The notes beneath the pieces were generated by a model, which saw nothing but the letters and a program-made list of their open reading frames with translations, was not told the DNA's origin and searched no databases. A stretch of 63,534 nt of DNA, counting the filler, from Reticulomyxa filosa (Eukaryota > Protista > Foraminifera): assembly GCA_000512085.1 (NCBI GenBank). It is 21 parts of 21 records of this genome, joined end to end, with 100 filler letters (N's around TTAATTAATTAA, not from the genome) between each part and the next. Parts side by side here need not be neighbours in the genome. Positions count along the whole stretch, not along the records: positions 53,898 to 55,573 come from ASPP01018299.1; 20 more parts are not named here. One strand, written 5' to 3'. Numbering within the stretch: the stretch's first letter is position 1; each line of letters begins with the position of its first letter. A program made the position numbers and the translations under genes. Shown in pieces: positions 3,544-55,573 of this stretch.

Positions 3544-6500
3544 ATGAAAAGATACACCGTGTTGCTAAGTTTTGTGAAATTTTTGAATTTGTTTACAAAA
3601 TTGAAACTTTTAATTTTTGGCAAAAGCCAGGAACAAAAAAACGAAAACAACAACAAAAAACACCAAATCTTGAACAATAAAAATACCGCGCGATATCGAA
3701 GCCTGCGGGACCACTTGTTACAAAAGCACAAAAACGTAGAATTGAAGCAATTTTTCCAGTATGCATGTCCACAATGTGAGAAATTGTTTCTTCACAGAGC
3801 TGGGCTTTTGAGACATTTAAAAGCAGCCAAGTTTAGCAGCTATTTGTTTGGTTCTTTTTTTTTGTTGTTATTGTTGCTCATTGTTTTTATTGAACAAAAC
3901 AAAACAAAACAAAAAAGTTAAATAACAAGCAAACTGAATAAAAATAGATGTTCACAAAAACCTATGCATAGTCAATACATCACTATTTTTTGATTTTTTA
4001 TTGTGTCATGTTTTGGGTAGTTTGTTTGTGGGCGTGGTTAATTTTGTGTGTATTGTCGTTTAATGTAGCGTACTGTACTTGTTAATTGTCCTCTTAAGCA
4101 ACTCAGAACACAGCCAACAAAAAAACAACATACGCATACTTAAATGTATGTGTGTGCATTGCAGTCATGGCAGTACCTTTGATGCGAACGCAACAGTTGA
4201 CCCGCTTAATGACAGCGAAAAATCAACCCCCTCAATAACGGTCTCAGCGGGTGAAAACAACGAATCTTTGAGAGTTCGATTTAAAAAGCAAGACATAGCT
4301 TATAATGTGACAAATCCTAAAAAAAAGACCGTTTGGCCATATCAATCAAGATGTGCTACCACTTTCGCGAAAGCGGGCGAAAATCCTTGCTGACGACAAT
4401 GGTGTCTCGATGCTGTCTTTTTGCAGCCCCTTTGATGGATTCGACAGTCATAGCGAAAGTCAGCTGGCACTGGATTGCAACAATATGATATCGGCGACAT
4501 TACCGAAGAAAGCAATCAAACCGGACCAAAATGAAGCGGAACAAAGCAATGACGAAGAGACACGAAAAAGATTTGCCAAGTACGGAGAGGGTTGCTGCAA
4601 ATGTGGAAAGCCGTGGAGCGAATTTCGAGATGAAGTGGCAATTATAAGCCACATTAAAGCAAAACATACGTATTATTGTAATTTTGAACAATGCTCGCGT
4701 CGCTTCACTCGATTCCAGCTGTTAGTTGAACACCGACAAATAACTGGACATTATGGATCGAGGTGCAAAAATCCTATTTTCACTGCTGGTTTGTTTCCAT
4801 TGATTCCAATTTTTTTGTTTATTTGATCGTCGTGATAACACTACATAAAAAAAATTTAGGATTGATTTTTCAAACAAACAAAAAAAAAAAAAAAAAACAC
4901 ACAACAAAACATACAAAAATCAAATAATTGACGGGAAAAGATGGCGATAATAAACATAACGCAGTTCCATCGACGTGCAAAAAATGCAATGAAAAAAAAA
5001 TTCGAGAAAATCGGGGGAATGGAAAGATCATTTAAAAATGCCACACCCGCTGTCTTGTCCCCATTTGTGTGGTGCAATGTTTGAATCAAATATATCACGT
5101 GCAAAACATGTACGTTTTGTGCACGAAAACGTGGAAAGAAATAGCACACCCGCGACGCAAGAGAGCTTGCATTTGGGCAAAGGACCTGTCGTTGCAATGC
5201 ACGAGAGAGGGGATAATGTGATGACAACAGGAAAGTTGAAAAGTTTTGAGGATATAATGTATCGAGGACAGCTGTTATGTCCCATTTGCTTGAAGCGCTT
5301 AAAAATTGAAGACCCAAAATTGCAAGAAAAGTATGACAATTTTCTGCGCTCCAAACAGCGCGAATGTGATACGAGTCATTCGTGGCTGGATTATCACCTG
5401 ACCGATGAGCCCATTGTATTTGAAATCCAGCAGTCGGTATTGAAATTCACGTAGCTGCATGTCATCCTGAGTTTGTTCCTACGCAATGGAAACACTATCC
5501 CACCAAATTGCTTAGTGCTGGGCCTGTTTGCAATTTTGCATCTGAGTTGAGACAGTTGCAGCAACAACAACAACAACAACAGCAACAGCAACAGCAGCAG
5601 CCAGGTCGACAGTGGTGGAATGGCAAAGAAATGACTCATGCGGACAATCGTGACGAAGAAAATGAAAGTGAAATCGACGAGGAGGCGATGAATAGATATC
5701 GTTCTCTTGCCGCAAATAACTCTAGTGCGGGATCGAATACTTTCCCATTAGATCCAATGAAACTTCGAGAAGTCAATCGGCTCAATGCAGAAAACCATTC
5801 CCATTCACAGTTTTTTCAGTTTTCGAAAAACACTTTGCCCAATTACACACGAACGCATAAACAATATTTGTTTGTTTTGACTTGTTCATTTCATTTCTGC
5901 CCTTGTTGATTATTACCTACACATGACGATCGTCCGGTTCATTCTTTGCTTTTGGAATATGTTATGTTGTGTTGCGTTACATTACGACTAGTTCAAATAA
6001 TGCACAAAGTACTCACAACACCAATCGATCAAAACCCGAGTTCTTGTACAACAAACCAGACCGATCGCATTTAGTTGATTTTGTCACCAAAAATGTGGAG
6101 AAATTTTACAACCAGGTAACATAAAAAAACAAAAATCAAAAATAAAAACAAATACGCACACAACAAATTCATAAGTAATACGTACACATACTATGTTACA
6201 AATGTGCACCCCCCCCCCTTTTTTTTTAATTATAACTTTTCAAAACAAAAGGAGAAAAATGAAGATATAACGAATGATTTGCCAAAAGATCCCGAAAGTT
6301 TGTTGGAATTAATAAAGGTATCATTCATGGTTTTGACATGAACAAAAAATATTGTGAAAGCGTTGATCGAATTGTGGCCGAAAAAATGATTGATATTATG
6401 GTATGGTATGTTAGTTGTGTTTTTTTTGGGTAAGGTGGAGCAAAAAAAAAAAAAAAAAAACAACAACACATACACTCTCGCATTTTTAATTGGAATATAT

Positions 6501-52800: not shown

Positions 52801-53959
52801 ATCAACTTCAGACATCATTCAAGAATGGAACAGAAAGTACGTTGACAGGCGCACGAACTTAAGGAAATGGCTATTGCAATTTACGTGAGACATTGCTCTT
52901 TGGCTACATGCTGTGCGGGAATTTTTAAGTGAAATGTGACTGATGTGTAAGAGCAATCAAATTGAGATGTGCTTCCAACTTTAAGTTGTAAAAGAAAAAC
53001 TCTTGTTCGGCTCGACTATGCATCTTCCGAGCTAAGTTAGTTGACTATCGTGTTAAAGTGTTATTAATGAACTTTTCAACAATTTTATTAATTTCTTAAT
53101 TTTTGATATTTTTTCAAATTTTCTACAATTTCAATTTCTCTTCAAATTTTAATTACACCAATCAATAGATAATTCTCTTCAGAAATTGTTGTCAACATTA
53201 GGATCCACCTTGAAATACTATTTAATTTATAACAGAGAAAGAAAATGCTAAGTGTTTCAAGTTTTTTTTCAAAGTATCAATTAAAATAAATTACACAATC
53301 TCATTTTGTAAAAAGTTCGGTAGTATCCACATCAAAAAAAACTATGATGATCAACAAAAAAAAATGTGTACATTCATTCAATCTTTTTTTAATTATCGCT
53401 TTTTTAAGAATTGCTTGCACCAATTTGTTTGAAGTTGCGAGAGCATAGGCGATAGTGCGCCAGTGCATAGCCTCACATGCTTGGCAAAAGGGATGCGCTA
53501 CTCTTGCTCTACGGTTAAAACCATAAATAGCAACTCCATCATTAGATGTATCGATGGATAATGTTCCAAAAATGTGCAATTGGCAATATCAACAACCACA
53601 CTGGAATTTCCAAATAATTTAGTACAATTCTTTGCCTTTTTTCATCGTCAAAGCTCACCGTCAAATAAAATATAAACAAAAGTGATGTTATCTTCTTCTT
53701 CTCATTTGATAATCACAAATCATTGTACCTGTGGACTTTGTTGTTCGGTTTTCTTTTTTTTTGTTTCATTTTGAAATCTGTCCTTTTCTGTATTATTNNN
53801 NNNNNNNNNNNNNNNNNNNNNNNNNNNNNNNNNNNNNNNNNTTAATTAATTAANNNNNNNNNNNNNNNNNNNNNNNNNNNNNNNNNNNNNNNNNNNNAAA
53901 AAAAAAAAAACAATATCCAGTACAATTGTATTTACAAAAAAAAAAAAACAAAAACATAG

Positions 53960-55573
53960 ATTGAAGTGCAAGATTCAAGCGCAAATACCATGAATGAACA
54001 GGCAGAAATCAAAAATGACCAAATTTCTCATGAAGCAGATCAAGCTTATGTATGATTTATTCCTTTTCATTTAGACATATGATTGAGCATTACTCTTCAT
54101 TTTTGCAAAAAAAAAAAAAAAAAAGGTAAAAAGCGGGAAAGAATTGGAAGAAGACAGATCAAAGCACTATAAATTAAAAAAAGAAACTGAAAATGCAGAG
54201 ACCGGATACATAAAACCTGGAATTAATTTGAAAGGCTATTGCACAAATACTGGCTGTTTAGCTTCAAAAGAAAAGTTACTAGTGTGGGTGAATCTTGGAT
54301 TTCGTGATATTTCATTCAACTCAGAAAATAAATCCTATCCTTGTCCAGACTGTGGAAAATCCACTGTTACATCCATTGAAAATACAACGATTTTCAATTC
54401 AGAACACATAATTAGTGCAAGCGATAATACGTCTGAGGAAACTAATCACTACAAATGTTCTTATTTAATTAAGTTAGGATTATCTTATGAAGTGAACGCA
54501 AATGAAATAAGACAACACGCAACGAGTTTGGAAGATTTGATCGCCCGAAGTGAAAAGGCAATGGAAAGTGATGAGATAAAAAAATTGAGTTCTGAATTAC
54601 AGCAATACGGCACAATAGTTGTAAAACCACCTAAAGTAAAAGACAAAGCACGATTATTAGAAAAAATCCAAAATGATTATAATGGGGATTATAAGCAAGT
54701 ATTCGATGTTGGAAGATTTACTATTTTATGTGATAATGCAATCAAATTGCAAACAGCAGTAGTAGTAATGAAGGAAGCAAAAAAATTTAATTTGATTGTA
54801 TCCGAAGATAAAGATTTTTTTGAACAAAAATCGAAGACACATCACAGATTCCACAATATTAAATTGTTTGTTCCAGAGCATGATGTATATGTGGAGATGC
54901 AAGCAACATTAAAAAAGTTTACAACATTGGAAGAATACGCAGTAATTGAAAATCCAAAATTAAGCCATCTGTTTTATGAACGTGTCCGAGCGTGGAAACC
55001 AAATAGTCCAGAAGAGGAAAATTTAAAACAAGCCAGTGACGAAACTTTAACAAAAATTAATGATGTTATTTGTGAATGGATTGATGACAAGGAGATACAA
55101 AAATTAGCAAATCGTTATGAATCACATTTGGGTATTGGAATATTGAAACCACCACAATTGTCGTTGAAAATGGCACAATTTGTATATGAACAATTATGTG
55201 AATTCACTCCAGAGACAATAAAAGGAAAGGCAATTTATGTGATATTATATGAATACTATAAAAGATATATCATTGGAGATAAATATCCAGCAAGTTGTGT
55301 TGATGTTGCGTTACTGCTACAAGAATCAAGAGAACAAGAAATGGAAGAAGACACTGAAATATCACAAGCATTAGAAACTTATATTCCATTGCAAGCAAAT
55401 AAGTATGCACATGTGGACAGTGAAGAGAATAAAGAAAATGACACATTTGATTGTCTCCAACATATCATTGAATTTTTAGAGGAAAAAGAAGAAAAAAAAA
55501 GTGAACAACAGCAAGAACAGCAAAGAAGCGTTATGATAATACAAGGAAAATCAGGATCAGGAAAAAGTGTATT
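53960..55573 (+). CDS. Zinc-ribbon + RelA/SpoT-like nucleotidyltransferase + start of a STAND/NACHT-type P-loop NTPase (NLR-like), partial
   Basis: PGINLKGYCTNTGC...CPDC, PPKVKDKARLLEK, VFDVGRFTILCD, THHRFHN and VEMQ, followed by ALETYIPL and Walker A VMIIQGKSGSGKS (55545-55568). Upstream exon 53960-54049 joins in frame via intron 54050-54125. Confidence 0.8.

Follow-up and report, generated by a model that had tools for sequence, protein, structure and literature searches.

A Tas1-like RelA/SpoT-fold domain at the front of a predicted NACHT-type receptor family in the foraminiferan Reticulomyxa filosa

The stretch of Reticulomyxa filosa DNA considered here (the window; 63,534 nucleotides joined from 21 parts of assembly GCA_000512085.1) includes a piece of record ASPP01018299.1 whose usable stretch, 53898-55573, is A+T-rich and 1676 nt long. 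This piece is the 5' half of the gene RFI_20940. It encodes an N-terminal domain with four conserved cysteines (Cys4), a RelA/SpoT-homologue (RSH) synthetase-fold domain, a helical region and, at the very edge of the contig, a P-loop, and we hold with high confidence that the gene family to which it belongs joins an RSH-fold domain to a NACHT-type NOD-like receptor (NLR). An earlier note, made from the sequence by eye, had placed a Cys4 module, RSH motifs in their RSH order, a Y-I-P-L motif and a Walker A motif in one open reading frame (ORF), and all of these lie at the places claimed, in the single frame 54126-55571. The features are collected in Table 1. Residue numbering starts with the ORF codon at 54144, and the similarity searches were run on the translation of exon 2.

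Table 1. Features of the RFI_20940 piece, with positions counted along the window (AF2, AlphaFold2; pLDDT, predicted local distance difference test)
Feature	Position	Strand	Residues	Description and basis
Exon 1	53990..54049	+		ATG and 19 codons; same residues and junction in the deposited model P0001 (RFI_20940)
Intron 1	54050..54125	+		76 nt, GT..AG, phase 0, A-rich tract at 3' end
Exon 2	54126..55571	+		482 codons without a stop; ended by the contig edge at 55573
Cys4 beta-sandwich domain	54192..54518	+	17-125	AF2 pLDDT 90.6 for the domain alone
RSH synthetase-fold domain, Tas1-like	54522..55085	+	127-314	Family profile, Foldseek, VIA
Basic ATP-binding motif K166-x3-R170-x3-K174	54639..54665	+	166-174	Equivalent to R-x-K-x3-S-x3-K in the Pfam RelA_SpoT profile
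D188-V-G-R191	54705..54716	+	188-191	Predicted Mg2+-binding Asp opening a beta-strand; alignment
H233-H-R235-F-H-N	54840..54857	+	233-238	Counterpart of the G-Y-R-S-x-H motif; alignment
E251-M-Q253	54894..54902	+	251-253	Predicted catalytic Glu of the E-x-Q motif; alignment
Helical region	55086..55379	+	315-412	Follows the RSH core; AF2 helices, pLDDT 83-97 (10-residue block means)
L-E-T-Y-I-P-L-Q-A motif and acidic linker	55371..55529	+	410-462	Low-confidence linker
First NACHT strand and Walker A	55530..55571	+		V-M-I-I-Q-G-K-S-G-S-G-K-S; rest beyond the contig edge

The gene structure follows from the deposited model together with the reading frame. An in-frame TAG (53957-53959) precedes the frame of exon 1, whose first ATG stands at 53990, and a further exon upstream of the contig start may exist. 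Intron 1 runs from a GT at 54050 to an AG at 54124-54125, and its removal fuses ...QAY to VKSGKE..., a junction identical in P0001. Exon 2 is 95% identical to P0001, the sole differences being two in-frame segments that the deposited model deletes, namely 13 residues (L-G-L-S-Y-E-V-N-A-N-E-I-R, 54473-54511) and 10 residues inside S-C-V-D-V-A-L-L-L-Q-E (about 55293-55322). Since both segments are kept in all paralogs and are predicted with high confidence in the structural model, these 'introns' look like annotation artefacts. All antisense ORFs are shorter than 60 aa. Long poly-A runs occur at the contig start (53898-53950) and where intron 1 ends (54106-54124). Such runs typify the R. filosa assembly, which is A+T-rich and of low complexity, and they probably add to its fragmentation.

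Central to the interpretation is the domain that follows the cysteines, for which the earlier note had proposed a RelA/SpoT (Pol-beta-like) fold; this fold is recovered both by a sequence profile of the family and by structural comparison. A single-sequence phmmer search of the PDB sequences already places Tas1 on top (E=0.007). A family profile (A4), comprising the RSH region of 35 sequences from the foram family and its distant relatives, matches Tas1 across the whole domain with 62.7 bits (E=3.7e-16), followed by RelP with 33.6 bits (E=3.2e-7) and by RelQ, Rel and RelA with E between 5e-4 and 7e-3; among the same PDB sequences CapRel gives no match at E<=0.1. The AF2 model, computed from 39 sequences, has a mean pLDDT of 85.5. 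Foldseek against the PDB returns RSH enzymes for all of the top 50 matches, Tas1 being the first (E=1.7e-8, 20% identity), and VIA-align superposes model residues 127-314 on Tas1 with a Z of 12.8 over 171 residues (root-mean-square deviation 3.9). The 15 RSH entries aligned in this way span Z 12.8 to 9.4, with RelQ and RelP at 11-12 and CapRel at 10.6-10.7. Judged from sequence, the domain is thus nearer to Tas1, with the (p)ppGpp synthetases and the tRNA pyrophosphokinases further away, the structural margins being small. PADLOC and NCBIfam scans of the protein encoded by the piece returned no family, and the look-alikes that a language model gave for the RSH part reached 0.81-0.83, which is chance level, and were not used as evidence.

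The predicted active site is well preserved across the alignment of 39 sequences. In the basic motif, K166 and K174 are each present in 36/39 sequences and R170 in 32/39, the motif aligning with K-S-R-E-R-A-M-Q-K of Tas1. D188, found in 36/39 and invariant in profile A4, and R191 (35/39) align with D-L-A-R of Tas1 and D-I-A-G of RelP. R235 is kept in 37/39 sequences next to a position 234 that is either His or Tyr; the bacterial relatives read G-Y-R-D at this site. The predicted catalytic E251 occurs in 37/39 sequences, the remainder being gaps, and Q253 in 36/39, both aligned to E-I-Q of Tas1 and RelP. Further, D188, G190, H233 and E251 are invariant among 23 aligned members of the family, at least 90% of which also keep K166, K174, R191, R235, Q253, H275, Y278 and the four Cys. 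K166, R170, K174, D188, R191, R235, E251, Q253, H275 and Y278 are common to the foram paralogs and the bacterial relatives. The retention of the active-site residues in paralogs that are otherwise 45-80% identical points to purifying selection on the active site.

Downstream of the RSH core, the helical region has no Pfam match, although it was not searched separately. The Y-I-P-L tetrapeptide occupies residues 413-416 (55380-55391), with Y413 and L416 conserved in at least 90%, and the model falls below a pLDDT of 50 at residues 413-434 and 455-476. The Walker A sequence GKSGSGKS spans residues 468-475 (55545-55568), and the contig ends 5 nt later. The piece thereby shows the hydrophobic strand followed by G-x4-G-K-[ST] that characterises the Walker A of NACHT STAND NTPases. 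That this P-loop belongs to a NACHT/STAND module of the same polypeptide, as the earlier note had supposed, is supported by paralogs 60-75% identical over 476 residues, in which the same P-loop opens a PF05729 NACHT domain (E 1e-9 to 1e-11) whose Walker B reads F-V-F-I-x-D-G-F-D-E. The C-terminal WD40 repeats likewise anticipated there are present in most of the long paralogs, the RFI_20940 piece itself ending at the contig edge. The longer models (1368-1734 aa) carry a short pentapeptide-repeat stretch and then 10-14 WD40 repeats. The WD40 repeats were confirmed by our own Pfam scan in P0056, P0057, P0058 and P0060, and WD40 families are listed by precomputed Pfam annotation in about 40 further long paralogs. 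Read from the paralog sequences, the full order is predicted to be Cys4 domain, RSH domain, helical region, acidic linker, NACHT, pentapeptide stretch and 10-14 WD40 repeats. The pentapeptide repeats (PF00805) follow the NACHT region and precede the WD40 repeats, at residues 984-1009 of P0057 and 965-1006 of P0058, and occur in many long paralogs. P0058, a paralog and not RFI_20940 itself, has 14 tandem 42-residue WD repeats with a mean identity of 59% (range 40-79%), whose variation is concentrated at a small number of positions, among them 16 and 34.

The family is large. The searches gave 55 shorter matches of 262-833 aa, nearly all from R. filosa and two of them environmental, and a search with the RSH region that admitted long proteins added 53 further R. 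filosa proteins of 954-1990 aa, with the upper length also given as 3034 aa, nearly all of which list NACHT and WD40 families in their precomputed Pfam annotation. Taken together, the shorter and long matches bring the genome-wide count to about 105 R. filosa gene models carrying the module. The full-library phmmer search yielded 100 cluster representatives, in which the distant matches from outside the forams are bacterial RelA_SpoT proteins. Several of these relatives are polymorphic-toxin-like, among them N-terminal eCIS_core fusions, a MuF/SPP1-gp7 fusion and a Kofleriaceae 'RelA/SpoT domain-containing protein'. One of the bacterial proteins, P0106 (3127 aa, on a 235-kb contig), carries eCIS_core near its N-terminus, a relative of the foram RSH domain at 2606-2765 and then a calpain-type peptidase domain, and looks like a polymorphic multi-toxin effector. 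Within R. filosa, the 1017-aa P0061, annotated as a 'vcbs repeat-containing protein', has Cys4 and RSH domains at 593-971, preceded by some 590 residues that Pfam does not match, and ends with no NACHT; either its architecture differs or the gene model is fused or truncated.

The N-terminal domain turned out to differ from what the cysteines had suggested. The earlier note read them as a zinc ribbon, and the four conserved Cys stand: C33 (54240), C38 (54255), C67 (54342) and C70 (54351), in the arrangement C-x4-C ... C-P-D-C, are each retained by at least 90% of the 27 family members compared. The zinc-ribbon fold does not. A zinc ribbon would be a two-hairpin fold of about 30-40 residues with two C-x-x-C knuckles, and the model of residues 17-125 is instead an all-beta sandwich of about 100 residues with one short helix. 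In this model C33 stands at a strand end, C38 lies ahead of the helix, at whose N-terminus the first pair (C-x4-C) ends, and C67-P-D-C70 sits in a loop preceding a long strand. The four cysteines are putative Zn ligands, their clustering being assumed. Pfam has no match to the domain above threshold and none better than E=0.1 (zinc-finger families appear at E>=0.1), a Foldseek search of the PDB gives nothing at E<=0.001, and a wide VIA search gives a best Z of 5.6, to generic jelly-roll or cupin-like sandwiches, which is below a meaningful level. On the strength of the model, the Cys4 beta-sandwich appears to be an undescribed domain, one that neither Pfam nor the PDB matches.

Outside relatives of the Cys4 domain are suggested by predicted structures and embeddings. 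The ESM Atlas holds matches with TM scores of 0.68-0.75 over about 100 residues, the highest at 0.72-0.75. Some are rotifer proteins, either hypothetical or with an ART ADP-ribosyltransferase domain, and others are proteins from Porifera and Mucoromycota that carry a ubiquitin domain (and RING); the embedding similarity to rotifer clusters is 0.91-0.94. A word-seeded profile search recovered two R. filosa fragments and one environmental protein, none from outside the foram lineage, and the predicted-structure and embedding matches are accordingly treated as leads. The contig of P0097 had been considered as a bacterial host of the Cys4 domain and was rejected, being chimeric by G+C content (GC). 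Contig_125688 of ENA ERZ25039517 (1-12389) is eukaryote-like with about 27% GC up to about 4.6 kb and then, at about 59% GC, encodes the bacterial families MacB/FtsX and GFO_IDH_MocA. A relative of the Cys4 and RSH domains lies in its AT-rich part, on two ORFs (3790-4389 and 4394-4624), and is about 39% identical to the RFI_20940 piece from the Cys4 domain into the first part of the RSH domain; a related protist is therefore present in that metagenome sample. Moreover, six paralogs (P0004, P0009, P0012, P0015, P0017 and P0022) begin with a further conserved stretch, some 60 residues long, ahead of the Cys4 domain, which the RFI_20940 piece does not have unless an upstream exon off the contig encodes it. 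The identity of these extensions as a small helical UBA/CUE-type domain, assigned by eye, stayed below threshold in Pfam (CUE E=0.064; UBA E=0.0048 in an environmental relative), and no claim is made for it.

With the structure of the gene, the fold and homology, the conserved motifs, the architecture and the size of the family established as above, it becomes possible to propose how such proteins might work, and at this point we infer catalysis, the identity of the acceptor, the trigger and an immune or allorecognition role. In STAND proteins, the binding of a ligand to the repeats permits the protein to exchange its nucleotide and to oligomerise, and the N-terminal domain is activated in this way. 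By this logic the WD40 propellers would bind a ligand, non-self or altered-self, the NACHT module would swap its nucleotide and oligomerise, and the N-terminal RSH domains, thereby freed or clustered, would move pyrophosphate from ATP onto the 3'-OH of an acceptor. Tas1 pyrophosphorylates AMP, ADP and ATP at the expense of ATP, forming pApp, ppApp and pppApp, and kills through exhaustion of ATP and ADP (PMC10083569). Since Tas1 is the nearest characterised relative, adenosine 3'-pyrophosphorylation is favoured as the likeliest output, and this would lead to an energy collapse of the affected cytoplasm, analogous to the NAD+ depletion brought about by TIR domains. As to the occasion for such a response, R. 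filosa is a large multinucleate network-forming cell, and by analogy with the heterokaryon incompatibility NLRs of fungi, recognition of non-self at fusion would be as plausible as defence against pathogens.

Several observations weigh against this proposal and have to be set beside it. The RFI_20940 piece scores 19 bits with PF04607 (E=0.0018), under the gathering threshold of 27 bits; the paralogs P0011 (27.9 bits) and P0037 (27.0 bits) reach it, and others score 17-26 bits. The Arg of E-x-Q-x-R-T is missing, the sequence reading E-M-Q-A-T-L, and the canonical G-Y-R-S-x-H is changed to T-H-H-R-F-H. The structural Z values of Tas1, RelQ, RelP and CapRel fall within about 2 units of one another, so close that structure alone cannot tell the RSH subclasses apart and the sequence profile has to do so, and at 20% identity to Tas1 the acceptor substrate is not readable from homology. 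The remainder of the NACHT domain and the repeats of RFI_20940 lie off the contig, and its architecture therefore rests on the paralogs. Many of the gene models are partial and the assembly is fragmented, so that the number of genes is uncertain and may include alleles, split genes and pseudogenes. Finally, to our knowledge, no RelA_SpoT NLR, those of fungi included, has an experimentally assigned activity or product. Overall, we lean towards an NLR-like STAND family with a Tas1-like RSH effector, with the proposed mechanism included, as the more probable account. The specific (p)ppApp/ATP-depletion chemistry is put forward tentatively, at below an even chance. It is possible, though on our estimate rather doubtful, that the full picture holds, in which about 100 R. 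filosa NLR-type receptors with a Tas1-like executioner would turn local ATP and ADP into (p)ppApp when activated, the Cys4 domain being a new regulatory or targeting domain.

The same data could be read in other ways, which differ mainly in what the RSH domain would act upon. If it were a tRNA 3'-CCA pyrophosphokinase like CapRel, FaRel2 and PhRel2, activation would shut down translation and leave the ATP pool aside. The CapRel structures indeed match well, with 165-195 residues aligned at the Z values given above and a Foldseek E of 5e-5, and the overlap of the subclasses in structure speaks in the same direction. Sequence points elsewhere: the family profile that finds Tas1 with 62.7 bits misses CapRel, identity to CapRel is 8-10% against the 20% to Tas1, and the K-x-x-D-Y-x-G-D and K-D-R-F motifs are common to the nearest bacterial relatives and Tas1, all of which makes the tRNA explanation improbable. 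A little less probable again is that the domain makes diffusible (p)ppGpp or another pyrophosphorylated nucleotide, which would trigger separate effectors or act on intracellular or ingested bacteria. R. filosa eats bacteria, the (p)ppGpp synthetases RelP and RelQ are the second-best matches in both sequence and structure, and manipulation of prokaryotic signalling has been suggested for the RelA_SpoT NLRs of fungi (PMC4986451); set against these are the clearly closer sequence relation to Tas1 and the bacterial toxin-type proteins and the fact that this analysis turned up no candidate receptor for a signal of this kind.

The remaining explanation, to which we give the smallest probability, holds that the RSH-like domain is catalytically dead and serves as a nucleotide-binding or scaffold module, or that the family consists largely of decaying repeats and pseudogenes in a repeat-rich genome. 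The absent Arg after E-x-Q, the altered G-Y-R-S-x-H, the subthreshold Pfam score of the RFI_20940 piece and the many 'partial' models of a fragmented assembly would all be expected of it. However, nearly all paralogs retain the Asp for Mg binding, the catalytic Glu/Gln and all three basic residues for ATP binding, the RFI_20940 ORF is open over 482 codons, and the bacterial toxin-type relatives share the same motif deviations.

The preferred reading, an NLR-like family with a Tas1-like effector, has consequences beyond this locus. The affinity to a toxin of known chemistry replaces the vague label 'ppGpp synthesis' with a concrete hypothesis that could be tested at the bench. If true, it would constitute the first eukaryotic mechanism of cell suicide or compartment sacrifice based on (p)ppApp, an ATP-directed counterpart of the NAD+ depletion by TIR and SARM1, and one suited to walling off the infected or non-self-fused parts of a giant syncytium. 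It also bears on how the effector repertoires of NLRs are assembled from bacterial toxin domains, on whether syncytial, fusing organisms generally expand such receptors, and on any role that pyrophosphorylated adenosine nucleotides might have in eukaryotes. Moreover, the Cys4 beta-sandwich is an addition to the modules associated with NLRs. Full-text literature searches returned nothing relevant that links Reticulomyxa with NACHT or NLRs.

In TIR-domain NLRs and SARM1 the enzymatic domain is an NAD+ glycohydrolase. The logic proposed here would resemble theirs in that an NLR or STAND switch, once oligomerised, would use an N-terminal enzymatic domain to consume an essential nucleotide pool; the fold is a different one, and NAD+ glycohydrolysis stands against ATP-dependent 3'-pyrophosphotransfer, so the analogy is functional only. 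RelQ, RelP and the toxSAS CapRel share the RSH synthetase fold itself (Z 10.6-12.1), and CapRel, too, has an RSH toxin domain and a sensor domain on a single polypeptide, which a protein of the pathogen switches on. Their sequence relation to the foram family is weaker (RelP E=3e-7; CapRel undetected by the profile), and the sensor of CapRel is a pseudo-ZFD antitoxin domain, whereas a STAND NTPase with WD40 repeats occupies this place in the foram family. The best match in both sequence and structure is Tas1/Apk1, together with the MuF-fused Apk2 (PDB 6OX6; PMC10083569), and K-x3-R-x3-K...D-Y-x-G-D, D-x-x-R, E-x-Q and H-x-x-Y-E are motifs in common with Tas1. Identity is about 20%, however, and the foram domain has no Tis1-type immunity partner and is fused to an NLR switch, where the toxins are delivered into rival bacteria. 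No PAAR or MuF delivery domain was found in the RFI_20940 piece or in the paralogs scanned with Pfam, and for this reason, and from its placement in an NLR, the domain is classed as Apk-like and not as an Apk toxin.

RelA-type domains are known as occasional effectors in bacterial conflict systems (PMC7159879), and in eukaryotes the closest parallel in design comes from fungi. RelA_SpoT-NACHT-WD40 has been catalogued among the fungal NLR architectures since 2014 as a rare class, its function predicted only as 'ppGpp synthesis' (Dyrka et al. 2014, PMC4986451; PMC12258605), and the earlier note's statement that RelA_SpoT serves as the N-terminal effector of some fungal NLRs agrees with this listing. 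The fungal and foram proteins are alike in having an N-terminal RelA_SpoT-type domain followed by NACHT and then WD40, in forming multi-copy families within syncytial, fusing body plans, and in that the function is only predicted in both; the internally conserved, surface-variable WD repeats of fungal NLRs (PMC4986451) also resemble those of P0058. In fungi, RelA_SpoT accounts for <1% of annotated N-terminal domains, with 17 NLRs in the Sordariales survey (PMC4986451; PMC12258605), in contrast to the roughly 105 gene models of a single rhizarian, and only the foram proteins add the Cys4 domain in front and the pentapeptide stretch before WD40. Since no fungal protein appeared among the sequence matches of the foram RSH module in either the full-library or the long-protein searches, the likeness is one of domain order alone, and the fusion may have been assembled independently. 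The architecture is thus not unprecedented in eukaryotes; what is new is the rhizarian lineage, the scale of the expansion, the affinity to Tas1/Apk-type toxins and the extra Cys4 domain, which together place the logic of the RelA_SpoT NLRs outside the fungi and among the largest gene families of a foraminiferan.

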